64,000 nt of DNA from Orbicella franksi (taxonomy: Eukaryota), in contig OZ116709.1 of the NCBI GenBank assembly GCA_964199315.1, forward strand, positions 5,766,001-5,830,000, read 5' to 3'. Below the pieces are notes generated by a model. The model had not been told where the DNA came from. It worked only from the letters and a program-made list of their open reading frames with translations, and ran no database searches. Below, in pieces: positions 169 to 56,600 of this stretch (position 1 is the first letter of the stretch; each line of letters begins with the position of its first letter). A program made the translations under genes and the position numbers.

Positions 169-3100
169 GTTTGTTTTCAGAATTATCGTTAAAAGAAGTT
201 TTCAATTTAATATCGATATCGCGCTATTGATATTGATCTTTTGAAATTTTCTTTGTTCTTCGTCAGCTCGACCCACGCCTACTCGTCCACCACCAGGTAA
301 GACCAACTTTTCTATCTCACTTACCATATTCAATGAAAACTCTTGAGATTTGAAAGTTCGGTAAAAATGTAAATGGTAAGACAATTTTGGCTCGACCGAC
401 CGGAAAATCTTCGAAATAAAAGGAACGTCTTGAAAGGTAGTCAAAAATTTCCAACTGAAATATCCGAGTGGAAAATGTACTTACCATTTGCAATTATTCG
501 CCGCCCTCTTGGAATTATGATCAGGTTTAACTCGTCAGTAGTCTATCTCGGTAAATTAGGGGGTTTGGGGTAGATGGTAAGTGGCCAATCCGAATGAAAG
601 TCACCATCAGGCATTTTTGCTTACCATTTGCACAACCGTTGACGAACCGCTTTCTTCATGTAAATGGCAAACAACCGGCATCTCTTTAGATTTTGACATC
701 CATATTTTCAGCCTCCTTCGTCAGTGTTGACGGCATGTCCGTATTATTTTATCACCTTCTCATACATCTTTTCTCCTTTCAGCTCTTCCACTTCTAGTCG
801 CTGTTTATCCACTGGACAGAATTAATGGCGGCCGTGACATCAGCCCACGAAAATGCCCGACCGCAAGGCGAGTTGGCGTGAGAATCGCCCCAGGTCCAGA
901 CGGACGAAAATACGGATCCACCCAATTCTATGGCAACCGCAACAGCTACGTCGAAATCCCGAACAACGGCAAACTTGACACCGTGGCCTCCATTTCCATT
1001 CTGACCTGGGTTTATCACGAGGGCATCAAAGGTCCTATCGTCAACTACAGACCAGGTCCCGGATGGGGCGTTCACTTGTGGATGGTTGGACCACGCACGT
1101 TATTTGCACGGTTCGTCCGCAGGGATGGAGTGTTTACCAAAGCAGTGGTCGTCACGAGCAGAAAGATACGGTACAGAGCCTGGAATTACATCGGTGCTAC
1201 ATACGACTACAAGAGTGGTGTTGCCAAACTATGGGTGAACTCGAGGTTGCTTGTGGTGAAGAGTATTGGACGATTCCGATTGGCTACGAACTATCCAATC
1301 AGAATTGGTGCGCGTCGTGGTGACAAACGGTACTTCAAGGGAAGGATTTTCTGTGTGCAAATCTACAGTCGTGCGCTAAACCGGAAACAAATTTTGGCGG
1401 CTAGTAAAACGTGCTTCAGGCCGTGTAAGTAGTTGTATGTGTGGCAAGTGCTTATGCGTAACGTAATATCATGGTTGAAAAATTACGCCTTATTTTTGGC
1501 GCGAACTTTCAGCGTTAATTTACAATTTTACGTGAAATACAATAAAATACAATAAGCCAGTCATAAGCCCGCAATCGTAAGCGTAATATGTCACCCACGA
1601 TATTATAAGGTAATCAAATGGTACTGACTCGAGAAATTAGGAAATGATTCCTGTTGCGTTTTGTCAAAATTCTAATTATTTCCTAATTTCACGCGCCACT
1701 ATTTGATTACTTATACTAATTCTGTAAGTGTAGTACGAGCCGAACGTCTCACTACCGTGAAAGCAATTATCCGTGTTTCACAAGAAATTAATTGTAAACG
1801 GATTAATTGTAAACGCTGTTTTGTGTAATGCGAGAAGTAGACGTTACCTTCAATTACCGTAATTGCGCTATGCATATGAAAAAACAATCGTTTACTAATA
1901 ATTTTCGAGAGGCGGCTCCTTCAGTATCTCAGAGATGAGATTCGAGTCAATACCCTTGTCTGCAGGATGGAATGATGAGGTTGCTTAGCAGAAAGACGTC
2001 CGCTTGACCTAACAATAGAATTGAAACTGGAAATAGTGAAAACGCAATTGAGGGCATGTTATGATAGAGCGGTTTTCATTTGAGTGTCGAAAAATAATTG
2101 GTTTTGACGCTACACGATTGGCTTTAAAAAAACTCACGCCACGTTTTCATCCAATCAGATATGCAGAAGTAAAACTAAAAGTAATCGTAACTCGTTTGCA
2201 CCTGTTTTCCCGCGCTTTGTTTCAGCTACATGCAATTACTTCGAGTTTTGATAGGCTCACTGGATTTTCTCCGTCCTCTGTGATTGGCCAGAACGAATAC
2301 TTTGGTTTTGTTTTTATAACACTCAATTGAAAACCGCTCTAGTATCCATTTTGTTGTTTTGTTACAATGAGTGGTGAATTAATCTCACCTAGCGTTTGTT
2401 TTCCTTCAAAGTGCCTACAACTAAACCGATCCCAACCACGACACCAAAACCGATAACGATACCTACAAGGCCGCGAGGTAAGATTAAGATCCAAGACCGA
2501 CTAATTTATGCAAGGGAAGAACTGGTTGAACGGGTAACAGAAGTCCTCTTAACAATTAAGGAGACTTCTGTATCACCAATAGGCTATTTCCGAGCTACCT
2601 TGTGTTTCTGTTTCAAAACGATTCTTCGTGCAAAACCTTTCATGTGAAAATTAGTTTGATTTGCGGAATCGGAACTGACGTATTAAGGTTATTCTCCAGT
2701 ATTGCATTGCGCATCCTTACTGCGCATAATTTCACGCGTGATTAGCGCGCGCGCATTAAAAACAATGGCGGCTTTTTGTTTACAACTGGACCTCGCCATA
2801 GAGGTAAATCGTCATTTTCTTGCAAACGAGTATGGTGACCTATCATTTTTTTTTCTGTTGTTTTGAATTGAGTGATAAATTTCTCTGTGTAAAATAAATA
2901 TGGACCAATTCTCAGTGTAGAACAAAAAGCAATCGTCGGAAACGGGAATTTAGCAACCAATCGTGACTACGATCATGATGCTGTTATAAGGATTTATATG
3001 GGTATAAACGAGGTCTGTTACTCCTAAACGAACATGAGGACCCCTCATTTTTATTTCAGAATTTAAGTTCCCATAATATAAACAATCAATAGGCAAAGTT

Positions 3101-6100
3101 TCACAAAAATCTCAGTGCAGGTTCTATTTCAGTGGAATGACCTTAACAGGTTTTCGTATACACTTACTAAATGTTTTCTTTTTTTTTTTTTAATTTAAGG
3201 ACCATTCAAAGCCTCGGCATTCTACCCTCTCACATCTAAGACAAGAGGGCGAGACCTAAGCGTGTTCCGTAACCCACCAGGAAAGCTGGGATACGTGCGC
3301 TCGGCACCAGGCCCTGACACGTATCCTGGTGGCTCGTACCAGTTCTATGGACGCCGCGACAGTTACATCGAGTTACCAAACCGCGGGAAACTTGACACAA
3401 GAAGATCGATCACTATCATAGCGTGGATTTACCACGAAGGCCGCGCGGGTCCCATCTTTAACTACATGCCAAACGGCTGGGGCGTTCATTTATGGATGGT
3501 GTCGCCGAGAGCGCTGTTTGTACGTTATACGCGTCGCAGAGGACGGAAGATGACGGCGGCGGTTTCCAGTCGTAAGATAAAACCGCGAACGTGGCAGTAC
3601 ATCGCAGCTACCTACGATTACATAACGGGGTACGCGAAGTTGTACCTTGATGGTAAAGTGATAGCGCAAAGGAGAATCGGAAGGATTCGACTTGCCACAA
3701 ATTATCCCGTCAGAATGGGCGCCAGAAGAGGCGACAGGCGGTATTTCCGGGGCCGAATCTCTTGCGTAATGGTGTTTGATGTCGCACTGAATCCCAATCA
3801 GATTGCACGAAGGAAGAAGCGCTGCTTTAGAGGCGAGTTTCTGTGACTGTCTTTATGTCTGTCAATCAGTCAGTCAGTCAGTCAGTCAGTCAGTCGGTCG
3901 TTCATTTATATGTCTGTCTGCCTGCTTGTTTGTCTTGTCTGTCTTTGTGTATGCTTAAAAGTCTCTGTGTTTCTGTCTTGCTGTCTGTCTGTGTCAGTTG
4001 TTAAGTCGATCTGTCTGTCTGTCTGTCTGTCTGCATGTATGTCTGTCTAATTATTGATGGTTCATTTTTTTGCTCTTTGCTTGTTCGTTTGCTTGTTTGT
4101 TTTTCAACTATGTTTTTCTTTTATTTGTCCAAGTAATAAATTATGCTTTACAAATTTCAATTGTGTAATGCATCTCATTGTGACATCTGTTTTGGCGACA
4201 AAAAGGACCCAAACGTTCTTGCAGAGGTACAGATAAGCTTTGACGTAAACAATTAATTAATCAATACTTTCCTTGATTCCATTCCATTGTAGGTGGGCCG
4301 CCTGGACCAAAAGAAACAGGTAAGAGTGAATTGTGTTGGGTTATTATTACTGTTCCATATGCCATCTACAATCGGCGACAAAATGACTTCAGACAGAAAA
4401 ATTCCCCGTAGAGTTCCTTGTTTCCACATGTAGCCGTATCATTGACATTTATGTCTTTCCCTCTTTTTTCAGCTTGCAAACCCAAGATTGACCTCACATT
4501 TGTAATTGACGCTTGCAGCGAAAACGATCGTTTCACCAAAGCTAACTTCGTCCGAGTCAAGAACTTCTTGATTCATTTAATCGGCGAGTTCAGTATCTCG
4601 GTTAAACGAGTGCGAGTAAGCTTGATATTGTACGCGCAGTACCCCAAACTCCTAATTAGCTTCAGCGCCCGAAAACCCTACATCGTCAGAGTCATTAACA
4701 ACATGAAGCTAGTGTGCGGTGCGCGCTACACCGGGGCAGCGCTGAAGTACTCTTACACTAAAATCATACGGCGGACCTCGAGGAAAAGCGTCCTGGTTTT
4801 GATGACGACCGGAGCGTCCAGAGACGACGTACGTGGAGCCACCGCGTTGCTGCAGCGGTCGAGAGTAGAACGTTTTAGTGTGGGTATCGGAAGGCGTTAT
4901 AGCTTTAGTGAACTGCAGTACATCGCTAGCGATCGACGCCATGTATACACCGCCGCCTACAGGAATCTAGAGTCCATTGTCACTCTGGTCAAAAAGAAGA
5001 TCTGTAAATCAGGTTTGCAACAGTCTTTACTTGATTAGATATGTTGTTAAAAATTTAAACTATTTGAGTCTATCTTGAATCTGTTGTTACTCTGGTGAAA
5101 AAAGACGATCTGTAAATCAGGTTTGCAACAGTCTTAACTCTATGAGATATGCCTTTAAAAATTTTAACTATTTCCTGAAATATTTACTCACTTATTTAAT
5201 TCACTCGTGTAAAGCTCGACAATAGTTATGCAGGGAGGCGAAGCCAGTAAACAATATTCAGTTTCCCCGAAAAAAGTATCGACACAAATCACGCTTTCGT
5301 GTAGATCATTTTGGTAATTAAAGGAACAGTCTTAGAATTTTTTTTTTTGTAAGACGTAATTTTCAAAGGAGCTAACCTCGTACTCAAGTCATTCCTTTCG
5401 CATTTGCCTCAGTTATTCTCATGCTTTTCGGGTTAACTGTAATTTGTGTTGGCTAGCAAGTAACGAAACTGAAGGTCTTCTTACCAATATACTTTTTTGA
5501 AAATTGAAAATTGAAATTAATAAAAAGGATAAAAAGTACTAGTTTTGACGATAGCACACATCCGTACGTTAAGTCTTGTTTACTTCTAAACTTGTTTGTT
5601 GTCGTTTTTTTTTTCAGATAAATATGTACCACCTGTGAAACCAATCATACCCTATCCCAGGCCCCCGACGCGTCCGCCTACCCGTCGTCCTCCTAAGCCC
5701 GGTAAGAGACCTCTTTTAACCGTGCACAGGAGTTCTTCAACCATCAATATACATGGGTTATTGACCAAGCGTAAGGTCAAGATGGCTGGATATTGGCCAA
5801 AAAGGAACGAGGCTTATATTCAACCATGTTGACCTAACAAATTTGGTCAATAAAGGATATGTTGTATGGACTTTGATGAACCTGCCTCGGCTTAGGGGAA
5901 ACTTTTTCTTGCCAGACACAGCGCGTAATCTCGAGCAGGCAACATAGCGCCATCTTTTCCGCTCGGGTATATGTAGCCAATAGCGCTGGATTTGGTTCAT
6001 CTTGCGTGCTCACAGAGCTAGGCATATAAGTAACAATCAGACTCATAGCCCGCAAGGGCTACGGGTCAATAGCCCATGAGGCGGAGCCGAATGGGCTATT

Positions 6101-6426
6101 GACCCGTGGTCCTTGAGGGCGAAGGGTCTAATTGTTTTAGTATCACCCAACTAGTCGGACAGAAAAGGCAATACTAAAGTTAGCAAACGCAAGATGAAGA
6201 AATATTAATTTGGGAATAAAACGAAAGAAAGCGTCACGCTCGATTGCGCCAATTTCGCTACTCGAGGACTATTACAAATAGTCCTCTAGTAGCGAAGCCA
6301 ATTAAAATGCAGGATTTGCATTAGTCCACTAGTTGTGTGATACTAATAATGTTTATTCCCACTCAGATTAATTTAGTTAACCTGTCGTATTGTTATCGCC
6401 GGTATTTCCATTTGTTTGTTATTTTG

Positions 6427-6458
<32 letters not shown>

Positions 6459-9400
6459 CACAGCTCACATACAGATGACGCTCGCAATCAACTGTTCTTC
6501 ACTGCAACAAAACTTGCAAACGAGACGTTCAGGCTGATCATGACACGCTGCTTAAGGAACCTTTTTTTTTTCTGGTTTATTTCGTACTGCAGGACCAGCC
6601 CGTGCCTTGGCGATTTATCCCCTTCAATCTCGCACCAGAGGAAAAGACGTTGGTCTCTATGGCAACCCACCAGGTATCCTAGGTTACGTAAGGCCAGCGG
6701 TGGGCCCTGATGGACGACCTAGGACATCCTACCAGTTCTATGGCCGTAGAAACAGCTACATCCGCTTTCCAAATCGCGGTCGTTTGGATGCGCAAAATGC
6801 AATCACGTTACTTGCATGGCTTTACCCAGAGGGCCCGGGACCAATCTTCAGATACGGTGTTGATTTCTCCGTCGGTAGGGGGCGTAGTTTGTCGCTGCAA
6901 ATCTTCCCGCGTGGATCGCAAAACACCATAATTCGCCCCCTGACTGCGCGCGGCGTTCTGCGATATCGCACGTGGCAGTTTGTAGGCGCTAGCTATGAAA
7001 AAAGAACTGGGCAAACGAAGATTTACGTGAACGGAAGGCTTGTTTCTCGTAACCGGCTGAGAAGGGTTCGTCTTGGGACCAATATTCCTGCAACAATGGG
7101 GGCTGGAGGTGGTAGATATTTCCGCGGTAGAATCTCCTGTATGCAGGTTTATGGACGTGTCTTGACAAGATGGCAGATCATCAAGCGAAAGAGAAGGTGC
7201 TTTAAAGGTGAATGAAGTCGTTATTTCTATGAATTAAAGCCAGTTGTTTGTTACTCCTTTTTTCTGATAGGGTAATAAGGAAATTAATTAACAAAAATAG
7301 TTTTTAATCCAGCGTGGCAGCGCTGCCAGGATTCAGCGTGGCCGAATGGTTAGGGCGCCGGACTTGAAATCCGGAGGTCGCAGGTAAGTCCCCTTAGGAC
7401 CACTAGCTGGTGGTGTTCTCAGTAGTCCCGAGTTATGCCCCTCGGCCACGCTTGTAAATAGCCAACTAATCCACCTCCTGCCAGTTGAGATTTTTAACCA
7501 CGTTATGTTCATTTACATTGTATTTGTTTTATCATTTGTTTCCATTGGCCCTGAAAAACCCCATTTGGGGAGTGGTCAATTAGGATATTAATTTTTATTA
7601 ATTTTAATCCACGTGAGTTTGCATCGGGCGTTCAGGTATTTTTTACCTAGAACTTATTGCTGAATGTAACGGTACCCATGCCCTGAAAGAAATTCAAAAC
7701 ATTTTCTGCTTGCATTCCTGTACACACCACATACCTTTACTCACATTGCATTGTAATGTAAAAGTTTTATCTTTTACTTTAGTTTTATTTACGTTTAATT
7801 TTCTTCTTAAGCAGGACTCCTGCTTATATATTGCGGCGATTATTGTTATTGTTACATCGAATTTGAACTGCTTTCCCGTTTTGCCCAAAAGCTCAGCTCT
7901 TTTGTCCTTTGTATTTCACTTGTGTATAATGACAATTGTATATTGCATTGTAGGAGTTCGCCCACTTCCTGCTCGGCCGAGACCACGGCCATCACCACGC
8001 CCAACACGACCTCGGCTCCCCCCAGTACGACCAGGTGAGGAAATTACTTTGGACAAAGTCAAATGACTTTTATAGGCACCCTGAAGCAACCAACGAGAAT
8101 ACAATATCTTGCCTTCGGTTGAAAGAATATTTGTTTTTAGTGGCGAGTACATTCAAATTTTTCTCTCGCTCTTGTACTTTTTTTTTCAATGGCTCTCATC
8201 TATCGTTAGTAGACATCTGTTTTGGATGTCTCGATATCAAATCCTGTCGATGTCAAATGCTTTTTTACACTCCAGCTTTCTATTGTTATGGTATCCCCTT
8301 TCTTACTCAACTATAGCAATCTAAATTAATAGCTTAGTCCTTTACATAATATACAATTTCAGTACAAATCAACTTAGTAAAGCAGATTTACCACAAGTCT
8401 GTTTTACATTATATTTTTAGTTGTTCGTCCCGCACGAGCCCAAGCCGTGTACCCACTTACCTTAAATACACATGGTCGCGACATCAGTTTATACAGCAAT
8501 CCCGCGGGAATCCCGCGAAGGATCAGGTACGTGCGAGGCCCTGATGGAAGACCGAATACTGCGGCGCGATTCCTTGGAAGTCCAAACAGCTACATTGAGT
8601 TCCCTAACCGTGGTAAACTGGACACTAAACGCTCCATCACCCTCTTGGCTTGGATCTTTCACGAGGGACGTGCAGGACCCATCTTCAACTACATGCCAAA
8701 CGGCTGGGGCGTGCACTTTTGGATGATTACGCCGACGACGCTGTTTGTACGGTTTACGCGTCGCAGAGGTCGGCGTTTTACCGCAGCTGTGACGAGTAGA
8801 AGGGTGTTGCACCGTCGATGGCAATTTGTAGGAGCCACGTACGATGGAAGGACTGGAATTGCTAAGCTGTTTGTCAACAGGCGTTTCGTAGCAAGAAGAC
8901 GCATAGGAAGAATACGATTGGCCACTAACTATCCTGTCAGAATGGGAACTCGTGTTGGAGATAACCGCTACTTCCTCGGTCGAATCTCGTGTATGCAAGT
9001 ATATGATCAGCCCTTGACATCATCACAGATCCTTCGACGAAAAAAGAGATGTTTCACACGAGGTAACATGCAGATAACGTTCTCGAGAAATAAATTTACT
9101 CCGCTACTTTTATTTCTCCACTAAATGTGCTTCCAAAGTAACCGAAGTTCTCATGCTAATCTGGAAATTTTCACAAGTGTTCGTTATTTAGAAAGATAAA
9201 TTTATTCATTATAGAAAACTGAGTTGAATTAATTGTTATTGACGAGTTTTATTCAGCAAGCTTGTTTTTCTTTTCTTTTGGTTTTCTTTTTGTTGGTTAT
9301 TTTTGGAGAAAAAGATCAGATTTACAAAGTTAGCATTTTGTTCTCATTGTTGTTGTTTCAGGCCCTGTGATTGTGCCAACCGTCATTCGCCCAGCCGGAC

Positions 9401-12400
9401 CAGGTGATTACTCCTTTTTCTCTCTCTTTCACTTACTTTACTGCGCTTACTGGGATCCGCCCAAATTATGTTCTCACTTTAAAAGAAACCCAATACACTT
9501 CTAAAGAACGGGATCTTTCTACTCCCAAAACTTCATCACCATCCACTCCGCTACAACTGTAGGTTTACTTTAAATTTTACTGAACCTCTGGGACTGCTTT
9601 GTCACGAATGCTTATTGTTTTTTTTTTTTTTCTCTATAGTTTGCCAAGGCAAGATTGACCTGGCGTTTGTTATCGACGCTTCCGGAAGCATCGAGGCCTC
9701 AGGCAGAGGAAACTTTAAGCGGTGCCTCAATTTCGTTAAGAGATTGGTCGCCTCCTTCAAAATCTCGAGGAAGTACACGCGCGTGGGAGTTGTCGTGTAT
9801 TCCAGCAGGGCGCAAAAAGTGTTTGGCTTCAACAGATACAGCAACAAACGTCTCCTCATGAAAGCTATTGACCGTATCCCGTACTTTCGGAGAGGCACAA
9901 GAACAGGCTACGCTTTGTCCTTCGCTCAGCGGTATCTGTTTAGAGGCAGGCGCAGAAGACGTAAGAAGGTTTTGATCGTGATGACTGACGGGAGATCCGG
10001 TGACCGCGTGCGCGGTCGAGCCCTGGCACTACATCGCTCAGGAATTGAGACCTTTGCTGTTGGTATTGGTAAAAATTACGATATCAGACAGCTCATACAG
10101 ATAGCCTCCACCAAGAGACACGTTTATGTAGCGAGATTCAGAAACCTGCCGAACATTGTGCGTGTTATAAAGTCGAAAGCCTGCAAAGGTACGTTAGTTG
10201 TAAACTTGTTTTAGGTCAGTTTGGTACCACTATTTCACTGACAATTCAAGAGTGGTTTAAGCAGTCGTTCGACCTTTTCCATGCCATGCGAAGTTATGAA
10301 GAGTTTATGTAAATGTGGAAAAATCATTAGATGGAGTAGAATACACATTCCTATCAAGCATCTGTTTTACATTTGTCTTCCCCTTGTTTTATTGTTTTGT
10401 TTTGTTTGTTTGTTTTTTTTCTCTTGTTTATTTTGTTTGTTTGTTCTGGTTTGTCTCTTTAAAGGTACACCTGCGATAAACTACCTTAATATTCATACGG
10501 TTGCAACTTGCTTATAAATAAAATCTTGCTATAACTCATCAATTTTCTTGAAAATATCCTCAACATTAACAACAATTGACTACATCGTGAGACAAACGAT
10601 AATACACTTTATTATAACATTAATATACCTTGATATTGACTTTTCAGCTGTTCGACCTCCTGTCAGGCCCCCCATAAGGCCTCCAATTCGACCTACAGCC
10701 CGGCCTCCAGTCAGACCTCGTAAGTTTGACCAAGTGTTTTGTACAACACTAATGTATACTTTAAACATAGAGTATTTGACGTTGACGTTCCGTTTTCCCG
10801 CCGTTTTCAGGTCCTGTTCGTGCCTCTGCTGTGTACCCTCTGACGTCAAGAACACGTGGACGTGATATCAGTCTGTTTGGAAATCCCCCGGGGATCCCTA
10901 GGAACGTTCGATTTGCCCCAGGCCCCGATAGAAAACCCTACGGTTCCTATCAGTTCTTTGGTCGATCCAACAGTTACATTGAATTTCCAAATCGGGGCAA
11001 GATAGACACCAAGCGATCAATCACTTTGTTGGCTTGGATTTACCACGAAGGCCGCGACGGACCCATCTTCAACTACATGCCGAACGGCTGGGGCGTGCAC
11101 TTTTGGATGATTTCACCGAGGACCCTTTTTGTACGGTTTACGCGCCGTAGAGGACGTCGATTCACCAAAGCAGTGATAAGCAGGCGAGTTGTGCCGAGGC
11201 GATGGCAGTTTGTTGGTGCGACTTACAACCAACGGACAGGACGAGCGAAGTTGTTTGTCAATCGAAGGTTTACTGCTAGTAAATATATCGGTAGGATACG
11301 ACTCGCGACTAACTACCCGGTGAGAATGGGCGCCCGTATCGGTGACAGGAGGTATTTCCGAGGACGAATCTCGTGCATGCAGGTGTATGATCGGGCCCTC
11401 ACAGCGAGACAGATCTTGCGTAGGAAAAGGAGATGCTTTAGAAAAGGTATTCATCGATAACTAATTATATGAACATACTGATAAAGCAGTTATTTACTAA
11501 TTGTACAATTTTAGGACATTTCGCGACATAGTGGACGAGGTAAATTGAGCCATACGGACGGTTCGTATCATGGCCCAGAAGTCGTACGTACGAGACGTGC
11601 GTGCCTCAGTACCACGACAGCCGCGTTTTTGGCGCGAAAACTTTACTTTTTGGGAGACGTCATTCCAGTCAAAAATATTGCCCATGTTTGTTTTCCCAAA
11701 ATGTTCATGAAGTTATACAAACTCATCATAGCGGACTGGCTAGCCTACCTTGTTTTTTATAAATTCAAGGATTAAAACTTTACCATGTTTAAGTAAAACC
11801 AATTCATTCCATCGCCCTCATCTTCGCTTCAGGTCCAGTCATCGTTCCTGGCGTTCCAAGTGGTCCAATTCGGCCAGCTGGAAAAGGTATGTTTTTAGTC
11901 TTATGATTGTTTGTTTCTTAATGAGGAGTTTATAAGAAAGAAGGCATTCTTAATAACCTTTTTTTTGTGAAATCTATGCGCTCCGATTGGCTCCCTAAAC
12001 GTTTAAACCGGCTTACTTTTCCGCTGGTTTAATACTAGCTTACAGAAAAATTAGTTTTTTTACCGAACTGAAGATGAGAGCCTCTATTTAATGCTTGCAG
12101 CCGTAATCATAGCTTGCGAGAGCAGACGTATTTCCGGCTGTCGCTTGTTTCCGTCTCGGTGGAGAGCAGCGACAGCCGAAAATACGTCTGCGGTCGTAGG
12201 CTAACGAAGTTGGCGAATTTCAGGATGCGATAGATTCTTCTAGAAGTTCAACTTGTTTTTTCCGTGGCCCTATACCCACATAGGGTTATGGTCGAAGAAG
12301 AAGAAAAGTGGAATATTTGTTTGTAGCATGCTTTCTTCTGTCTATCGTGGTGTAAAAACTACTTTTTAGTGACTAGAAAGTTACAATTCAAGTAGCTACG

Positions 12401-26614: not shown

Positions 26615-26645
<31 letters not shown>

Positions 26646-44600: not shown

Positions 44601-47600
44601 TGAGAATGGGTGCTCGTATCGGTGACGGGAGATATTACCGAGGACGAATCTCGTGTATGCAGGTTTACAATGGTGCCCTTTCCCTGCGACAAATTATCTC
44701 GAAGAAACGGAGGTGTTTTAGAAGAGGTGAGTATGTTGGCGCTTTTAAAAATATTTCTAAGTCTTAAGCTCCTAACTTGGAATCTAGAAGCGCAAAGCAA
44801 GTATTAATAGATTGGGCTAGTACGCACTCTCATAATTTCGCCCGTTTTCGTCAAGCAAGGGTAAAGTGAAACTATTGCATTTAAATTGTCGTTATATGAA
44901 AGGAACATTAAGCTTTGTGAATTGTTTCTTATGAGAAACTTCAGGAATATTTACACTTTTTTATCCCATTAACAGTTCCAGTAAGACCAAGACCAGGACC
45001 CAGTCCTACTGGCCGAGGTATGTGGAAAATACAATTGCGCAAGTTAAGCAATAAAAATATTTCAGATGTTAGTATTAACTTAAATATCTTCCAGGTAAAC
45101 CCTAATTATTGTCATTTTTATTTTATTTTAGTGTGCAATAGACGTCTGGATCTCGTGTTCTTAGTTGACGGATCCGGGAGTATCGAAGCAGCCGGTCGCG
45201 GTAACTTCAAACGTTGTATAGAATTTGTCAAGACCATGGTGTCTTCATTCAGTGTGTCACCACAGCGCACGCGTGTGGGTGTGGCATTGTTCTCTTCCCG
45301 CACCTGGTTGATACTGGACTTTCACCAAAGCAGAAGCAAGGCTACCGTGCTCCGTCGCATTGGTAGCATGAGATACCCACGCGGAGGTACCAAGATTGGA
45401 AGAGCCTTAAACTTCGTCCTACATCGATTGTTTAGACGAAGCAGGAGAGCGCTCAAGGTAATGAGAAAAACGGATAGCTCTTAAGATTATGTAATCTTTC
45501 CTTACAATATCCTGAAATGCGCTGTCAAGTGGAACAGTCTTTATGAGGAGCTTACTATTGGACCACAATAATGCGGAAATTTAATTAATCCGCAACTTTT
45601 CGTAATTTCTTTTGCACAAGTTTTGAAGCACCTTATCTCAGAAGTTCTCATTTTCTTTTCTTAAAATTACACCTTTTTTTTTCTTCCGCGCTTACTTTGT
45701 TGTCAAGGTAGATGTTATACGGATCATCTCTGACAGCTGATTGGCTGATTTCGAAGAAACGTTTAGTTAATATTATTCTAACTTGGTGTTGTTTTATTTC
45801 TGCAACTGGTAAGCACCTCGTATAAGAAGTTAATCAGCGAATGGAAATTGAGCGTATACAAGCCGTAACGTATTATTAAACACGTTCGTTCGTTTTATGG
45901 TTTTACGATCCGTGAATCGTTTGCGCGCAGTTTCAGACGAGCAATCTGTATTTTCCCTTCTTTTCAGGCCCTAGTAGTCATGACGGATGGCATCTCGCAA
46001 GATCGTGTGCGGAGACCTGCACTGGCTTTGCGAAACCAGGGAGTGCGGGTATTTGCTTTGGGGATTGGTCGGCGATATCGAAGACACCAACTTCTGCAAA
46101 TAGCTACAAATGGACGATTCGTGTTCACTGCCAACTTTAGAAGTCTGAATAGAGTCGCTCGACGAATCTCAAGGAAAATATGCCGATGTAAGTCCTTTGC
46201 CCAAAATACGCTGCTAAGCGGGCTTAATTCGTCTAGCCTCGAGGAAGCGCTAGCCGTGGAGTTTTGTTGCAGTAGGCCGCTTAGTGCTAGATGGATGACT
46301 GCTTCTGTAGTGTAGAATGTTTGTTTTTTGTTTTGTTTTTCTCTTTGCCTTACTGTTATCTCGTCATTTTTTATGAAGTTCTCCTTCAACTCTTTATTTC
46401 CAACGGGTCACCTATAGAAAATGTGCATTTTGTTATATTTTCTTTAGCTGAATTTCATTTTATTTTCTCGATTGTGTTCTTTTTAACTGTTTTCTAACGT
46501 TTTGCTGTCGCTTCTCTCTTTAGTGAGACCGAATCGAAGACCTGTGCGACCAGTTAAACCGTACAGGCCGAGCGGTAAGTGACGTTTTTATGTTTCATTA
46601 TCATTTTCATTGAGCTGTTTGGGCCGGAAGGGGTGCTAGTAGAAATTACTTTGGTAATGTGGTGATTCCTTTTGTTGAAGCCCGTAAACCTGATATCCTT
46701 ACTTAATAAACGAAAGCTATAGATTTTCTCTATCTCGGTTGAGACAATACCCTGTTTCTCTACTAACTTTGGATGTCTTAACAGAAGCCGGCACAGCAGA
46801 AATTTTCTGTGTAATTTTGTAACTTATTGTCTAATTGATTTTGTTCTTTTTCGCTAGGTAAAACTCGAGCTGTAGCCATTTTCCCGCTGAATGGACGCAC
46901 GGCGGGCAGAGATATAAGTTCCAGTAGAAACGCGCGCGGAATACTTAGTTACGTCCGTGCCGCGCCTGGGCCAGATGGATCACGTGACGGCTCTTACCAG
47001 TTCTACGGAAGAAGCAACAGCTACATCCTCATCCCCAACCGAGGAAACCTAGACACCAAACGTTCTATCACTCTGTTAGCGTGGATCTTCCACCAAGGAC
47101 GTGCAGGACCCATCTTCAACTACATGCCAAACGGCTGGGGCGTGCACTTTTGGATGATTACACCGAGAACGCTGTTTGTACGGTTTACGCGTCGAAGAGG
47201 ACGGCGTTTCACGGCTGCGGTCGTAAGCAGGAGTATCACACCTGGTCGATGGCAGTTTGTTGGTGCAAGTTACAACGGACGAACAGGCCAAGCGAAGCTC
47301 TTTGTCAATAGAAGGTTTACAGCGAGGAAATACATCGGGAGAATACGGTTGGCGACTAACTACCCGGTGAGAATGGGTGCTCGTATTGGTGACAGGAGAT
47401 ATTTCCGAGGACGAATCTCGTGTATGCAGGTGTACAATGGTGCTCTTTCCCTGCGACAAATCATTTCCAAGAAACGAAGATGCTTTAGGAGAGGTAAGCA
47501 TGTTGGCGCTTTTAAAGATATTTCTCTGTCTTAAGCTCCTAACTTGGAATCTAGAAGCGCAAAGCAAGTATTAATAGATTGGGCTGAAACTATGGCATTT

Positions 47601-50600
47601 GAATTGTCGTTATGTGAATTGAACATTAAGCTTTGTGAATTGTTTCTAATGAGAAACTTCAGAAATCTTTATTCTTTCTATCCCGTTAACAGTTCCAGTT
47701 AGACCAAGACCGGGACCCAGGCCCACTGGCCGAGGTATGTGGACAATACAATTGCGCAAGTTGAGCAATAAAAACAATATTTCAAATTTTAGTATTTATT
47801 TTAGTATCTTGCAGGTACACACTAATCATTTTCATTTCTTAATTTATCTATACTAATGTTTTTATTTTTGTTTCAGTGTGCAATAGACGTCTCGACCTCG
47901 CGTTCTTAGTTGACGGATCCGGGAGTATCGAAACAGCCGGTCGTGGTAACTTCAAGCGTTGTATTGAATTTGTCAAGACCATGGTGTCTTCATTCAGTGT
48001 CTCACCACAGCGCACGCGTGTGGGCGTGGTATTGTTCGCTTCCCGCGCGTGGCTGATTCTAGACTTTTACCGAAGCAGGAACAAAGCAGGCGTGCTCAAT
48101 ACCATTGCTAGGATGAGATACCCACGCGGAGGTACCAGGATTGGAAAAGCTTTAAAACTTGTCCTACATCGATTGTTTAGAAGAAATAGGAGAGTACTGA
48201 AGGTAATGGAAACAAGAGCCGGTCACTTTGAATTCTTCTCGCCCCTCTAATAAACAAAAAAGTAACTCAATCTAGGCCTCAAACGTATTCAATAACAGAT
48301 TTATCTATTTTCTTTGAAGGCTCTAGTAGTCATGACGGATGGCATCTCGCAAGACCGTGTGCGGAGGCCTGCACTAGCTTTGAGAAGCCGCGGAGTGTGG
48401 GTGTATGCTTTGGGGATCGGTCGGCGATATCGAAGACGCCAACTGGAGCAAATAGCTACAAATGGACGATACGTATTCACTGCCAACTTTAGAAGTCTGA
48501 ATAGAGTCGCTCGACGCATCTCGAGCAAAATATGCCGAAGTGAGTAAAGGGTTTTATATTTTAAGAGCGCAGACATTCGCATACGCCTTCTGACTAGAGA
48601 TGCGTAATAGAAACTACTGCTTGTAGGATATTTTGAGAGGCACGTAGAAAATAACAGTAATGATTAGAACAATAACGGATTACAAACAACTTTGCTTCAT
48701 TTCAAATAACGAAAGAGAACTACCCGCCTGAATTATGAACTGAACTGCAGAGATGGGTTATTGTTGGTCCGAAACAGTTTATTTCCCTTTTTAAAATAAT
48801 GTCAAAGGTTTCATGCTAACTGGAGACACTGAACCGCAACCACATCAGCAAATAAACTAACAGTCGCAATTGTTTGCTTCAGGTCACCCGCTCCGTCCCA
48901 GGCCATTCCGTCCAGGACCTCACATAAGACCAAGTGGCAAAGGTTTGTCCTCGGCGTTATGATGAAGACGCTTGAAAAATGTCTTTATTATTTTATTTTT
49001 TAGCTATTTTACTTCTTTGTTTATTTGTTTGTTTCATTTCCTCTCATTGCTAACTGAAAAAGTTCTTCAACTTTCTTTTGCTGTAATTGACTTTTTAAAG
49101 ATCGGTTATTTGGTACTGTGGAGGGCATTATCCTCTAAAGAAGCGCCTTACGCTAGATTGTTCTAGTTCCTTGCTATAGCAATGCAAGACCTTTATGTTG
49201 ATTATTCTTTATTTGCTGTTGCCATAGTGTGCCGCAAACGTCTCGACTTGGCCTTGTTGATCGACGGCTCTGGCAGTATCAATGCTTACGGCCGAGGGAA
49301 CTTCGGGCGCTGTCTCGACTTCGTCAAACGATTGGTGGCTTCATTCAGTATCTCCCCCACACAGACTCGTGTTGGTATCGTTCTGTTTTCAACTCGCGCA
49401 TGGCTCATCGCTAACTTCAGGGGACACAGAAACAAGCAAAGCTTGTTACGTGCGATTAGTCGCATTAGATATCCCAGAGGTGGCACGAAAATTGGACGAG
49501 CGCTGAGATTTGCCAGATATCGGTTGTTTAGAAGAAGGACTAATCGGCGTAAGGTAAGTGCGTGGATGGAGGTTTCTTTTAAAGTGTCCCACTCAATCGA
49601 TTTGCAGCCTATTGGCAGTCATTATCTGGACGCCCAAACAGACGCCGCGCGAAGGTGCAATGTTTGGCTTTACTCACTATGTTTTTAAAGTTCCTGCTTG
49701 GAAATGCTCAAGCTTATGTAAAAGTGTGCTCGCAAATCTCTGACTCCTAGCACTTGCGTTGTCCGATGATGAAAGATAGAGTTGTAGGATTATGGCAATA
49801 GCAAACGGAAGCAATGAAAACTGGTTGATGGGGGCTGTTCAACCATCTCTCAATGAAACAATTGGAACAAGGATTCAAAAACTTGAGTGGTGTATTATCA
49901 GTCAACATCAAGTCCACTATTATTTCAATATTATGTACACAGATGTAGCGGTTGGATCGTTAGTTTTGAGATCAGTTTAACAACTTTTTTGAAAGTTTTT
50001 GCTTTCTTCACTTGTTAGTTTTGATCAGCTTTTTGTCACACCAGGTAGTGTAGTCAGTGCTTTCCTTGATGTTTAGGTTTAAACTTTTTGTTTACTTTCC
50101 TTCAGGTACTGCTTGTCATGACTGATGGTATTTCACAAGACTCGGTCCTGAAATCGTCACGTGCTCTCCGAAATGCGGGCGTGCGTATTTTGGCGCTCGG
50201 AATCGGCAGAAAATTCAGACGAGCTCAACTTAACCAGATCACGGCAAACCCAAGATACGTGTTCAACAGTGGCTTCCGAAACCTTCACCGTGTAGTGAGG
50301 TCAATCAAACGAACGGTGTGCAAAGGTAAGTAGCAGTACTTCAATAAATGGGTTTGAACAAACTACGCAACACTATACTAAGAGGTTCTCTATTATTCCT
50401 AGCAGTAAAAACGATGCATTAATGTGTGCAGCCATTTGAGTGTGAAGAAGGGTGCACGGGTTCCAGTTATCTTTACCGTGATCGTGCTGTTTGTTGGCAA
50501 CCAAGGCGCGTTGTTTAATTCCCTTCCTCGCCGGAGAAATTTGAAATGGGAGGTTTCACCCTGAAAACGCATCAAATGTTTTCCGTCCACACTACTCCGG

Positions 50601-53600
50601 AGAAATATTAAAACGCAACAATCAGTGGTTCATTTTGGATTTGTGTTTGAGGAAAACTTGGTCAGGAAAATCACATGATTACCGTGACGCCATCGTTTTC
50701 GGAAAGCTCTGTTTTCAAAATGTTTTAAGCCCACACGAAAACCAAAACCCGGCGTTTTCAAATTCCTCTGATTTGAAGAACGTTTTCGAAAAGCTCCGTT
50801 TTCGTGACGGATTACTTTGGACGGTAGCTGCGTTTTCAAACTCCTCCCGCGTAGTGTGGACGGAGCCTTAATGGCCGCGATTGCGTCATAAACGCCTCAT
50901 TCCAAAAAGATCAGGCTAACTTTTTCAGGTTCGTCCTTCCCACTCCGTCTTATTTTAATTTCGAAACCAGACAGCCATACCAAATTAAACAAAATGGCCT
51001 AACTTGTTTGTTCCGCCGTGTATGTTTGTCATACCACATTTCTAATGTAAAGGTGTTCTTCAGGTCGCCCGATACGTCCCAGACCAATACGGCCAAGACT
51101 TCCAGTGCGACCTAGTGGCAAAGGTAAGACTAGGGCTGAGCAAGCTTAGATCAGAATAGGGGTGTTTTCCATTTGTATGGAAAAACTGGGTTTTCTGGTG
51201 GGAAACCAAATGAAACGGGTCTTTCCAATGAAAATACAGAGCTGAAATACAGAAATTCAGAGGTACAGTAATAGCCCACGTATAAGAACCTGGGTTTTAA
51301 GAACCTGTTAGGCTAAAATTTTCATTTTAAGCCCCCTCCACATAAGAACCTATTAAGGCTAACATTTTAAGTTAGGTTCTTATCAGTGGGGTTGCTGTAA
51401 AATTGTATAGGTAGAAACTGCTGAATTAAGATCACCATCTATTTAAAAGTAACTTGACATAACTTTTTTTTTCTTTCAAGCTTAAGTACCATGTTGTATG
51501 TCTACTGTGTTTGCCATTCAGATAATTCCCCAAGTATTTGCAAGTACTGCACTCTACCACAGTATCAAAGAAAGCTTTCTGACCATCTCCATCTCTGTGC
51601 GAATCACAAAATATTAAAAGTAAAATATCAAAATATATCCCAATGAAATAAATAACTGCAAAATATCAAAACAACGTAAGCTCCCAATGGGCAATGCCTC
51701 AGCTTCTCAACGTGAGTTTCTTTGCTATGTTTTGTTAAGGACATATACTGTACCTACACTGAACTGCCTATAGGCATTGCTCTATGGTACAAATAAATGA
51801 TTTATACAGTGTACTGTATTATGAGATGATATTTATCTTATATATAATATATTCAGATGAAATTCATATGAAAATATAAGAACCTATTTTAAGAACCTTG
51901 GTAGCCTAAATTTGCTTTAAGTACCATTTATATAAGAACCTATTTAGGCTAAATTGAAAAATTCAGGTTCTTATACGTGGGCTATTACTGTATTTCCCTT
52001 TTCTCGTTTTTACGGAATGATCGTAAAATCGCTGTACTATGTTGCTTTTTCACACTAATTCCATGCTCCTTGATGAAATACGCATTCGTTTCAGTGGGAA
52101 ATGAAATGGAATAGTCCTTTCCACTAGAAAGATTTTGACTGCTGTCAAATGGTACACACTCGACCCGTCTCATTTTATTTGTTGAAAATTTCTGCTGTTT
52201 CATTTGGCGGAAATTTTCACCGTTTTTTTTTCACCCGAACAGAAAGAGCTCTACGTTAAACTAATTCGTTCTTTTTTGTGGGTCATTTTATTTTGCAAGC
52301 AAAAAAGTACATTAGAAAACTGGTCAAAATGATATTACTGGAGAAAACTTACTTTTTAGTGGTATTGTTTTTAATTTTAACGAGTGTTCAAACCTGTAAT
52401 ACTATGCAATTTCCTAAAGGAATATTTTCTATTTCACGGAGAACACTGGGAGATTTTAAGGACGGTGCCTACTAAATACAAAGGTTTTCGCGCCAGGTTA
52501 GGACCACGCGGAAAAAGTAGATCTTTGCAAGGGCTATTGGAATCCAGCAAGAAAAATAGGGGAAGCCACGCATTTTTTCGAGATAATTAGCCTTGAATCT
52601 CAAAAAATGCTGACATCAGCATTTTTCTGAAAAAAACAAGGAAAGCGTATTTTCTTCACAGATTTCCTTACAATTCGCCTTTACATACAGAAAAGCAAAC
52701 ACATTTAAAAAGATCTTTAAACTACATGGCAAATGGTAACATGAAAACCCTTTTTGGTATGTTTTTAATAACAAAATCGTTGCAACAGCACTTTTAGTGT
52801 CTCTGACAACCTTCCTCTGGTTCAGCTAAAATACGGTCTAAATACCTTTTGCTCACAACCAGAAACTAATCACGTGTTGAATAGTCTTGCCACTTCCATT
52901 TCATAACATAAAATGTGGGGGTAACCACGCGTTTTTTTTAACTTATTCATCTCTTTTGAAAACTTTTACTGTGCCCGTTACATTTTTTCCTGTCACCTCC
53001 CCAATAAGTAAGACATTTGCGTATCTCGCACTTTTCTTGCGCGCGCACTACGCCATCTGCAGGTACATGTTTACAGTTGAATTTCAGTATAATTTTCGAC
53101 AGATAACAGCTAGGTTTTCAGCTTGAGGACGTTAAGAGTTAGTGGTTAGCGATATGCTACTATTCTAGTGTCCCTGGTTTAAGTACAGGTTCATTAAACT
53201 TGATTTGGTCACAGTGAGAATTTTGCTTTTAAGAGGAACATTTGAAAGGTTCCAGAGTTAGTTGTTTAAATTGTAACCTCCTTTCATACCATACCAGCTT
53301 TCTGATTGGTTTGCGTTATTTTCCATTGCTGTGTGCCTGAGAGAAAGAAACGTTGGACACTTTCCAAAAGTAATATTCTGTATATTCTTGTTTAATTCTT
53401 TTTCTTGTTAAATAATGTCTTTGCCTTCATATACACAGGCATGTTTAGGCTTAAGTCATTGGTAACTATTATTTACAGGTTCTACTCAAGTACATTACAT
53501 TAATCTTCGCTTTCCTGGTTAGCCAATGACACGAAATAAATCAAATTTGTATTGACGAGTTGCCCAAACAAATGTTTTTGTTTTCTTTTAGTCTGCCGCA

Positions 53601-56600
53601 AACGTCTCGATTTGGCCTTCTTGATTGACGGCTCTGGCAGTATCAATGCTTACGGCCGAGGGAACTTCCGGCGATGTCTCAACTTCGTCAAACGATTGGT
53701 GGCTTCATTCAGTATCTCCCCCACACAGACTCGTGTTGGTATCGTTCTATTTTCAACTCGTGCATGGCTCATCGCTAACTTCAGGAGATACAGAAACAAG
53801 CAAAGCTTGTTACGTGCTATTAGTCGCATTAGATATCCCCGAGGTGGTACGAAAATTGGACGAGCGATGAGATTTGCCAAATATCAGTTGTTTAGAAGGA
53901 GAACCAATCGGCGAAAGGTGAGTGTAGGGATGGAAGGTTCTACCCTGTTCTCTTCAATATATTAATGACTATTTAAAAAGTGCACCTTTTTGCCTTCTTT
54001 ACTTGAAGTCTTGTGGCTCTATCAGTGTCTATCCTTTTTTCCAATCTAGGCCATACTGAAATTCATTATAACGCGTTTTGACTTTCTTAGAGGTGGTACA
54101 ACAAGCGATTATGATGTTTCAGTGCGTCCTTTTTATCTAAGAAATACATGCTGTGTCTCTGTCTCTTTATATAGTGTAAGAATAGATTATAAATGAAATA
54201 GAAAATTGCATAAATGTTTTCTGACAATTTCGCTGGCTACCCTTGAAGTCTGGCTGGCGGACTAAGTGGGCATCTGATATCGATCGATAGGAGGCTAGTG
54301 CTACAAAGCGCACGCTCGTGGTTTTCATAGGTCATGGCCAATTCGTCAATGATCACAGTCGATGTTCTAGATATGGTAAAACGGTGCTTACCAAAACGGT
54401 GTTTACCAACTTTGATAGTTAACTATCAATGTCTAATTGCCAGTTGAGGTACTGCCTTTATCACTGAGATAGCGTTAGCCCAACTCCATTTCACATTTTG
54501 TCATTTGTTCTCCAGGTACTGCTCGTCATGACAGATGGTATTTCCCAAGACTCGCTCGGGAGATCCTCACGTGACCTCCGAAATGCGGGCGTGCGTATTT
54601 TGGCGCTTGGAATCGGCAGAAAATTCAGACTAGCTCAGCTTAACCAAATGGCAGCAAACCCAAGATACGTGTTCAAGGCCGGCTTTAGAAGCCTTCATCG
54701 TGTGGTGAGGTCAATCAAAAGAACTGCTTGTGGAGGTATCTATCTTAAATTAAATTAAACAGAGATAAAGTACTTACAAGAGAAGATGAAGGGTAGCAGA
54801 AGTAATCCCCCATGTAGACCTTATTCTTAAGGTGATCCCGCTAAAGTTATTTTTAGATATGGCATCCAGTCCTCACGCGGATAATGTGACCGCGCGGGTT
54901 GCGTGGATGTTTTCTTGTAGGATAAAAATGTGTATGAAGCTGCTTGGGCTAGCCACGGAGATAAAATTCGTGTCAGAGGATTGGCTATTTCTAGACCCTC
55001 CTGGAATTTATAAAGCCGCAGATGATGTAAAAATAATTTGAGCGGTAAGCAAGGCGACGAAGGATGAACTCTTACCCTTTATCCTCTCCTAGTACTTAAA
55101 GTTACATTGCGCAATCCCGCAAGTCAGATATTATCATTATTATTATTATTATCATTATTATTATTATTATTTATTATTTATTATATTATTTTTTTCACTT
55201 AAATTCCTCATTTAGCATTTCCCTCAAGTCAGTTTTAAACACAGGTCTGTCCAGTACCAGGGTAGAAACGCTCGACCAAACACTGTATGAGATCAAAAAT
55301 CATCTCGTGCTAAAAGCAGAACATGGCGATTGATCAACCAATCAATGCTGCTTTTGACCTTAAAACAGGTTTTCACTAGAATCACAAGCATAATCGCGAG
55401 TACGATTCTCGCGTGCAAATACAAAGATACGCAAGGGAAAGCACGTAGATTGAATCATTGATTCTTGTGCTTGATTGTGCTTGCATTTCACAGTGTCTCG
55501 TTAGTCTGTTAAGCCCTGTTCAAACGGGAAATGTTTGGCGACCAAACACGATCAAACATTGTTTGGTGACCAAACAACACCTTGTTTGATCGCGTTGAAT
55601 AAAATTTGAACGTCAACAAACATTTGATCAAATACTATAAAATTTACTCGTTTGGACGATGAACAAATATGTTTGATACCGTTCGGCCATTTTGTTCAAT
55701 ATCACCTGTTTGGTCCTGTTTGGTCGCCAAACATTTCCTGTTTGGACAGGGCTTTATATTTGCGTTTATGCGTGCGTCGCTAATGAACATCAGGCTTTGC
55801 GATACTGACAGTATTTTGTGTTACATATTTTGTAGCGCGTCGTGACCAGGCACGCAGAACAAAGTGGAAGCGTAAAACTAAAACACGTCGTTTTCAGTGG
55901 AGAAGAAGGCGGCGGCTAAGGAGAACGCGAGGACGCAGGCGAAAGAGGAGAATGCGTACGTAAAAACTGGTCTTGTATACCCAACTTAAAGGAGCTCAGT
56001 CACAATTTGCGCCTCTTGAAAAATTTAGCCTAAATGTTTCAAGTTCGTCGTTTGTAATCCGTGTCAATCTTCGCATCCTTGACCATCCTTGTTCCTTTAT
56101 GGTTTATTATTATCTCTTTGATGTTTTTCTATCTTAGTAAACTATTATTTTCAGGTTTCCTTCCATTTAAAGGAGATTTTGTACGTGGCCAAAAAAAAGA
56201 CGAAACACCGTGATTGAGCTCCTTTAAAAGTTTATTCGAGATTCTTTTGGAATATTTTCCGGATTCTTTCGGGGTTTCTCTTTTGAAGTATTTAATTCTC
56301 GTTACCCTGGTTCTCAACACACACCGGTTTTGATGTGACGGAGAGGACGTTAGGCGTGGTTCTCCCTTCACTCTCTGTCAGTATGAGTTGAATTATAAGT
56401 CTGAATTATTTAAGATTTTTCAAGTTCTAAACCACCTATTATGAAACAGCATGCTATGCTACCTGGAAATGGACACCATTTATCATTTCATCGATTTGTT
56501 AATGCATTGCACATATCGCCGATTTAGATGCAATGTATAGAGTAAATTTTTTTACGCAGGCCTCCGCGCATCTCTTATTTAAAGACAAAACATTAGCAAG

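Follow-up and report, generated by a model that had tools for sequence, protein, structure and literature searches.

Arginine-coated Laminin_G_3, VWA and WSC domains in a predicted giant gene of the stony coral Orbicella franksi

The window analysed here, a stretch of 64,000 nucleotides from Orbicella franksi (GenBank assembly GCA_964199315.1, contig OZ116709.1, positions 5,766,001 to 5,830,000 of the forward strand), contains at least 55 kb of what is, as predicted from the DNA, a giant stony-coral gene. Its product would be a 'beads on a string' protein, in which Laminin_G_3 (LamG) jelly-rolls of about 200 amino acids, VWA domains and WSC domains are parted by short, stiff, acid-free Arg-Pro linkers. 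Three unrelated extracellular folds are supercharged together in this array, and the charge is held across coral lineages whose synonymous divergence is saturated. Our literature searches brought up no arginine-rich coral protein with LamG, VWA and WSC domains, nor any natural protein of this size in which every folded domain bears about +35.

The plus strand of the window presents a long row of open segments, each of about 200 amino acids, in which Pfam profiles name three folds with matches above the gathering scores: Laminin_G_3 (PF13385; 54-61 bits against a cut-off of 27.6), VWA (PF00092; 144.8 and 90.8 bits against 23.8) and, by a narrow margin, WSC (PF01822; 29.7 and 28.8 bits against 27.8). 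A domain map produced with phmmer over all six frames of the window places 16 LamG, 14 VWA and 3 WSC domains between positions 1 and 54,740, on the plus strand only, the third WSC being located through its paralogue alone. The start of the window truncates the first LamG, and one intron splits each of the last five VWA domains. All 38 domain exons are open, i.e. hold an uninterrupted reading frame, and domain exons and linkers are joined in phase 1-1. Each LamG carries two invariant cysteines, 20 residues apart, and the VWA domains carry end cysteines; the metal ion-dependent adhesion site (MIDAS; DxSxS ... T ... D) is intact in 13 of the 14 VWA domains. The retained domain types and the conserved cysteine pairs are consistent with a secreted extracellular matrix protein.

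Every full LamG carries a net charge of +31 to +40, while the VWA domains range from +22 to +37 and the WSC domains from +17 to +24; the isoelectric point (pI) of the domains lies between 10.4 and 12.0, and arginine makes up 11-24% of their residues. When pooled, the domains contain 15.6% Arg, 4.8% Lys, 2.8% Asp and 0.8% Glu. Summed, they amount to 6,178 amino acids, approximately 709 kDa and a net charge of +1,040, corresponding to 1.47 charges per kDa, with single domains at 1.57-1.96. The hand counts by which the initial annotation had drawn attention to this bias were exact: the sixth LamG exon (L6; 10831-11448) has 8 Lys and 40 Arg (48) against 6 Asp and 2 Glu (8), and the second VWA exon (V2; 9615-10211) has 15 Lys and 29 Arg (44) against the same 6 Asp and 2 Glu (8). 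Two basic runs had also been said to recur; FTRRRGRRF does so, with six occurrences (9-10 with close variants), while the other, a 10-residue run, is present only once. The suggestion that the few remaining acids are largely structural is about half true, since LamG keeps five acidic columns, three of which are common to neutral relatives, and the MIDAS Asp is kept in all VWA domains but one.

The linkers are micro-exons in phase 1-1, 27-102 nt long and flanked by AG and GT, with Pro/Arg repeats, for instance VRPP or (RP)n, as their products. Together, the 16 linkers comprise 318 amino acids, of which 41% are Pro and none is Asp or Glu, with a net charge of +94, and a proline directly follows 80 of their 94 basic residues. 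Such Arg-Pro spacers are stiff and should resist trypsin-like cleavage. The bias is, as had been claimed, common to the three unrelated folds and to the linkers between them.

Two contigs from other corals were available for comparison: L001, a contig of another assembly, and L003, a Tara Pacific coral metagenome scaffold. L001 is collinear with 3.2-20 kb of the window and L003 with 16.2-38.5 kb, in both cases exon for exon. Exon DNA identity between the window and these contigs is 72-83%, while the introns gave no alignment at the thresholds used; the linker micro-exons occupy the same intron positions in L001 and L003 and encode recognisably similar peptides. Across the orthologous domain exons (11 in L001 and 12 in L003), nonsynonymous divergence (dN) is 0.05-0.19 and synonymous divergence (dS) runs from 0.8 to more than 2, which is saturated; dN/dS, a rough value here, is 0.04-0.19 where dS could be estimated and has no defined value for two of the 12 pairs with L003. 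The low dN/dS, the collinearity and the linker conservation therefore indicate that these are coding exons under strong purifying selection, and the order of the individual domains is, judged from these alignments, old. Summed net charge is likewise maintained, at 361 in the window against 358 in L001, and at 368 against 383 in L003. The proposal of selection on whole-protein charge thus gains support, given that all folds and linkers are cationic and that this is kept across orthologues at a dS of at least 0.8 and a dN/dS of 0.04-0.19.

These data bear on the suggestion that the charge is a mutational or compositional by-product, or that the array is a decaying repeat. No gene model of the basic kind was found in public protein sets, and the last units (40.8-48.5 kb) were copied in tandem recently, as such a reading would have it. 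It is nevertheless largely refuted, and we regard it as very improbable: dN/dS stays at 0.04-0.19 while the introns have diverged beyond alignment, and no domain exon is interrupted. Furthermore, arginine is encoded by all six of its codons, the window is of ordinary composition (GC 0.38-0.46), the window also has, 3 kb downstream, a LamG_3 exon of neutral charge, and the modelled folds have confidence scores above 90.

The origin of the charge was traced among relatives retrieved by an exhaustive HMMER search with L6, charge being counted on each matched LamG stretch. The resulting distribution has two humps, with approximately 57 representatives at a net charge of +20 to +44 and approximately 87 at -19 to +10. 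The basic representatives all stem from ENA, Logan or JGI contigs, as single-exon open reading frame (ORF) calls, while the neutral or acidic group holds named proteins of Ptychodera, Branchiostoma, Hydra, Nematostella and Exaiptasia. Several of these neutral relatives also bear VWA (net -9) and WSC (net -5 to 0) domains; the combination of domains is thus the old element and the charge the new one. Family-wide basicity, which the initial annotation had named as fatal to its view, is disproved by these values; the bias of the array goes far beyond chance and beyond what is usual in the family. VWA homologues down to about 45% identity are also basic, with a median of +35, and one at 44% identity stands at +5.

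A phylogeny of 149 LamG domains unites 56 basic rows and a single intermediate one in one clade, with a support of 98 in the SH-like approximate likelihood ratio test (SH-aLRT). Adjoining this clade are the Exaiptasia protein and a few sequences of intermediate charge (+8 to +14). When Lys, Arg, Asp and Glu were masked, a tree keeping the basic rows together was not rejected and even did better than the free quick search (approximately unbiased test, p-AU 0.77). The simplest reading of the sequence data is one supercharging origin followed by long retention.

How the surfaces were recoated is visible in the composition of the two groups. Per 206 aligned LamG columns, the basic clade has 40.5 Lys and Arg and 8.3 Asp and Glu, as opposed to 16.8 and 19.1 in the neutral relatives. 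Arginine rises by 8.5 percentage points and lysine by 2.9, at the expense of Asp, Glu, Ala, Asn, Ser, Gln and His, while the hydrophobic residues do not drop. A basic residue is present in at least 90% of members at only two of the 206 columns, in 50-90% at 35 and in 10-50% at 55; the charge is therefore diffuse and shifting and does not mark a site. The 24 columns that turned mostly basic are occupied in neutral relatives by polar or small residues (84%); 19 of these columns fall outside the strands of the model. 'Resurfacing', the term used in the initial annotation, is therefore a fair description, polar loop residues having been replaced by basic ones. Some deep members use lysine as often as arginine, so the conserved quantity is charge and not arginine as such. 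The beads were thus recoated, polar and acidic surface residues, mostly in loops, giving way to Arg and in part to Lys. The hydrophobic core, the disulfide cysteines and the MIDAS were spared, the outcome being about +35 per bead and about 1.5 charges per kDa. The recoating took place, on the simplest reading, once, in a lineage that goes back to ordinary neutral LamG_3/VWA/WSC proteins, and purifying selection has maintained it since.

AlphaFold2 models support the folding of these recoated domains. The LamG model (L6) is all-beta, with a predicted local distance difference test score (pLDDT) of 96.6, and the VWA model (V2) reaches 92.0 and shows six strands alternating with helices in a Rossmann-like arrangement. 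Searching the LamG model against the PDB with Foldseek returned jelly-roll subdomains of bacterial neurotoxin binding domains, at a template modelling score of about 0.7 and 14-18% identity, which is a match at fold level only. No functional meaning was drawn from these neurotoxin matches, given that only the jelly-roll fold is shared at such identity. A search of the ESM Atlas yielded generic LamG clusters only.

The neutral LamG_3/VWA/WSC proteins of amphioxus, a hemichordate, Hydra and sea anemones (XP_078610005.1, XP_070543443.1, XP_065639357.1, EDO41679.1 and KXJ12773.1) belong to the same LamG_3 subfamily at 38-52% identity, and some of them likewise combine LamG_3 with VWA and WSC. These relatives are uncharacterised, and they differ in that their domains lie at -19 to +10 as against +22 to +40 in the coral array; the Exaiptasia protein is the one that branches beside the basic clade. 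The closest solved relatives of the VWA domains are matrix proteins. The best match is the N-terminal VWA array of collagen VI alpha-3 (PDB 9han; E 1e-115, summed over many stretches), which shares with the coral array its long tandem VWA strings and lies in an extracellular filament. The coral VWA domains, in contrast, alternate with LamG_3 and WSC, and no triple-helix segment was seen in the window: no collagen Gly-X-Y segment occurs among the plus-strand open segments at 1-55 kb, the N-terminal half lying outside the window. To our knowledge, extreme positive charge is not a feature of collagen VI. The second-best solved match (E 4e-40) is the mussel byssal protein PTMP1 (PDB 4cn8), a secreted VWA protein of a marine holdfast, which, unlike the coral array, has just two VWA domains and lacks LamG and WSC. 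SVEP1/Polydom combines VWA with Sushi/CCP, EGF, HYR and pentraxin domains (PMC12549020), whereas the array shows LamG_3, VWA and WSC only.

With respect to charge, there are four points of reference. Naturally supercharged proteins are typically small nucleic-acid binders, with a threshold of about 0.75 charges per kDa, which the coral domains exceed at 1.47. The engineered GFP(+36), in which surface residues were swapped and the fold was kept, has about 1.3 charges per kDa; the coral domains, at 1.47-1.96, are natural, and three folds are supercharged together over at least 700 kDa. Eosinophil major basic protein (MBP) and eosinophil cationic protein are globular proteins with Arg-rich surfaces and a pI near 11, which are kept in secretory granules, take up eosin and bind polyanions resembling heparin. 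They are small, single-domain, membrane-toxic vertebrate proteins of the C-type lectin and RNase A folds. MBP is made with an acidic pro-piece; the short acidic stretch that follows the coral array cannot neutralise a charge of +1,000. Finally, the cement of sandcastle worms and the mussel foot proteins are secreted cations that work underwater when paired with polyanions or anionic surfaces. These adhesives are short, low-complexity chains rich in Lys, His or DOPA, whereas the coral array carries its charge on folded domains and arginine dominates.

What emerges from this anatomy, with disulfide-bonded beads of extracellular type, MIDAS carboxylate sites, lectin-like folds, Arg-Pro spacers and unlocalised charge, is a multivalent, secreted polycation with polyanions or anionic surfaces as its binding partners, a reading that we consider somewhat better than an even bet. 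Such a product would bind sulfated glycans, acid-rich proteins, poly-carboxylates and negative surfaces through spread charge density and not through one site. MIDAS sites take carboxylate ligands, and these sites and the lectin-like folds would add specific contacts. The protein would serve as an adhesive or cohesive extracellular material, in which arginine may be favoured for its short-range bidentate and cation-pi bonds, as these withstand charge screening in seawater. Coacervation, wet adhesion, binding of sulfated glycans or poly-gamma-glutamate and membrane disruption, the roles put forward in the initial annotation, are candidate functions. The array may offer natural templates for salt-tolerant polycationic binders in biomaterials.

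A number of points weigh against a single secreted polycation under selection for its charge. The N-terminus, and hence any signal peptide, is outside the window, and on sequence grounds the 55 kb could be one gene or several in tandem. Neither a spliced two-domain ORF nor a named gene model of the basic kind was present in the protein libraries searched, by word index and by exhaustive HMMER. The dN/dS values are rough because dS is saturated, and the grouping in the LamG tree could be aided by shared composition. Finally, there is no sign of active charge compensation, the variance of net charge among the 56 basic domains being 23.9 as compared with 25.0 expected for independent columns.

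With regard to the setting in which such a polycation would act, the product is a molecular candidate for the sticky filling of spirocysts or for a cationic counterpart to the acid-rich skeletal matrix. We rate the spirocyst highest among the specific settings, although only as a tentative possibility: the product would be the eosin-staining adhesive (microfibrillae) packed in the tubules of spirocysts, the sticky capsules of hexacorals, and upon discharge would spread and glue to negatively charged prey or substrate. A giant bead string bearing some +1,000 charges suits this kind of material. In Lophelia, a stony coral, the content of the spirocyst tubule is 'highly eosinophilic', i.e. it binds an anionic dye, is laid down as fragments during development and, after eversion, feathers out and sticks to glass (PMC5363355), and we count this in favour of the spirocyst. 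Cnidocyte types of Nematostella, furthermore, express their own vWFA-domain proteins (PMC12549020). On the other hand, the nearest named sea-anemone relatives are neutral, yet anemones also possess spirocysts; the window revealed no motif of cnida type, minicollagen-like or otherwise; and other eosinophilic cells exist, such as granular gland cells. We found nothing in the literature on the protein composition of the spirocyst tubule adhesive. It is equally tentative that this adhesive, or another dedicated polycationic glue of corals, is built of folded Arg-coated domains and not of disordered chains.

The skeleton provides a second setting, which we consider unlikely. Here, the product would be released by calcifying cells as the cationic partner of the acidic skeletal matrix, forming with acid-rich proteins, sulfated glycans, or carbonate and bicarbonate a dense phase that shapes aragonite or anchors the tissue. 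The presence of the array in stony corals, as well as in coral metagenome scaffolds of Tara Pacific, is in keeping with this, as are the intact MIDAS sites, which suit carboxylate ligands. Skeletal proteomes do contain VWA and laminin-G proteins; however, the laminin-G proteins are of another type, neurexin-like with EGF, and the present protein is not reported in the skeletal proteome literature examined (PMC4890752). With an arginine every 5-6 residues, trypsin peptides would be too short to detect, and this, together with the lack of a gene model, would hide the protein from tryptic proteomics and suggests why it was missed. Nothing here points to a restriction of the family to calcifying species.

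More doubtful still is a defensive polycation of mucus or epithelia that would agglutinate or damage microbes through their anionic envelopes, in the manner of small cationic proteins of host defence. The high positive charge density suits such a role, and lectin-like LamG and WSC folds could contact the microbial glycans. Known membrane-active proteins, however, are unlike these rigid beads and their very large size, and no amphipathic segment was noticed. The strict domain order over deep divergence and the low dN/dS are also unlike fast-evolving immune effectors. A secreted adhesive or cohesive polycation remains our preferred reading, and the layout of its predicted exons is as follows.

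Read along the plus strand in window coordinates, the array begins with the C-terminal part of LamG exon 1 (6-170, net +13), cut by the window start, and continues with a predicted phase 1-1 Pro/Arg linker micro-exon (267-296), LamG exon 2 (803-1420, +31), a predicted Thr/Pro/Lys linker (2412-2477) and LamG exon 3 (3223-3831, +33), for which the L001 orthologue gives a dN/dS of 0.09. Just upstream of the first VWA exon, the splice-site pattern suggests a doubtful collagen-like (GPPGPK) micro-exon of 10 amino acids (4293-4325). VWA exon 1 (4463-5020, +24), among the least basic, is the sole VWA with a degenerate MIDAS, DACSEN replacing DxSxS and MTTG replacing TDG. It is followed by a Pro/Arg linker (5618-5701), LamG exon 4 (6613-7206, +33), an Arg-Pro linker (7954-8034), LamG exon 5 (8447-9121, +35), VWA exon 2 (9615-10211, +36, the modelled V2, with an intact MIDAS), a VRPP-repeat linker (10648-10719) and LamG exon 6 (10831-11448, +40, the modelled L6, dN/dS 0.04); the three linkers of this section are kept in L001. 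Next come VWA exon 3 (12580-13146, +35), LamG exon 7 (14453-15073, +36), a predicted Pro/Gly/Arg linker (15730-15792) and VWA exon 4 (16201-16773, +25), whose two orthologues stand at 24 and 25.

Two linkers, at 17214-17273 and, of Arg-Pro type, at 18960-19034, are kept in both L001 and L003; they flank LamG exon 8 (17866-18489, +32) and precede VWA exon 5 (19477-20034, +32). LamG exon 9 (21093-21734, +39) and VWA exon 6 (22484-23029, +33) are followed by a linker (23504-23551), LamG exon 10 (24456-25079, +33), an Arg-Pro linker (25218-25274) and LamG exon 11 (25960-26580, +36), both linkers being kept in L003. The second of these lies between two LamG exons, which argues that the gene continues through this point. 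We considered a second gene start at 25897, where an ATG is accompanied by a signal-like hydrophobic stretch, and rejected it: the stretch is the polypyrimidine tract of an acceptor. In the junction as read over 25.0-26.0 kb, this acceptor is in frame with the upstream phase-1 linker exon and a donor follows the LamG exon; conservation with L003 starts only at about 25933, and the conserved linker exon upstream also speaks against a start at 25897. The intron between these LamG exons is filled, at 25280-25720, by a pyrimidine-rich tandem repeat with units like CCTGCGTT / CTCGTTGC, which generates long spurious ORFs on both strands and has the strongest AT skew of the window (-0.23).

The longest (Arg-Pro)n linker, of 33 amino acids (26862-26963), is kept in L003 and is succeeded by VWA exon 7 (27937-28509, +22), LamG exon 12 (29117-29737, +32) and WSC exon 1 (30375-30689, +24), which has 23.8% Arg and a dN/dS of 0.04. 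Thereafter follow an Arg-Pro linker (31378-31434), VWA exon 8 (31532-32086, +32), LamG exon 13 (32885-33505, +33) and a linker at 36950-36994, both linkers again kept in L003. VWA exon 9 (37318-37863, +35) is one exon in the window, whereas in L003 it is split (18557-18888 and 20045-20282) by an intron of about 1.1 kb, which looks like an intron gain or loss inside an orthologous exon; the last five VWA domains of the window are split at roughly the same place. WSC exons 2 (38160-38648, +20) and 3 (39515-39760, +17) complete this section.

LamG exon 14 (40820-41452, +35) is followed by VWA 10 (42131-43179, in two exons, 42131-42481 and 42952-43179; +32), a predicted Arg-Pro linker (43733-43783), LamG exon 15 (44111-44737, +34), VWA 11 (45113-46186, exons 45113-45460 and 45965-46186; +33), another predicted Arg-Pro linker (46524-46574), LamG exon 16 (46878-47501, +37) and VWA 12 (47861-48541, exons 47861-48205 and 48317-48541; +34). 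The three LamG-VWA units of this region (40.8-48.5 kb; LamG starting at 40820, 44111 and 46878) arose by recent tandem copying and are nearly identical, their tip branches measuring 0.008-0.04, unlike the rest of the array, which is old and conserved position by position. The array then runs through VWA 13 (49209-50327, exons 49209-49556 and 50103-50327; +37), a predicted Arg-Pro linker (51064-51123) and VWA 14 (53576-54740, exons 53576-53929 and 54513-54740; +37), with a GT donor at its end. On the minus strand, ORFs of 127-169 amino acids overlie LamG exons at 8489-8998, 14624-15115, 41018-41401, 44309-44800 and 47076-47567; these most likely just mirror the richness of the sense frame in Arg codons and are not genes.

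A coral-like ENA contig, L002, has at 897-10942 four VWA exons, then a LamG exon at just +8, a SUEL-lectin ORF and an M14 carboxypeptidase, and may represent the edge of a related array in which the charge tails off. Downstream of the window's own array, a probable next exon at 55834-55958, protamine-like with Arg/Lys runs, was read by eye between AG and GT bounds. It is followed by an exon at 56643-56812 that begins with WGKKRD and continues as an Asp/Glu/Gly run, a possible dibasic convertase site and acidic tail. The neutral Laminin_G_3 on the same strand, about 3 kb beyond the array (57033-57299 and 57917-58429; 54 bits, net +6, pI 9.3), belongs either to the end of this gene or to a neighbouring one, and serves as an internal control for composition.

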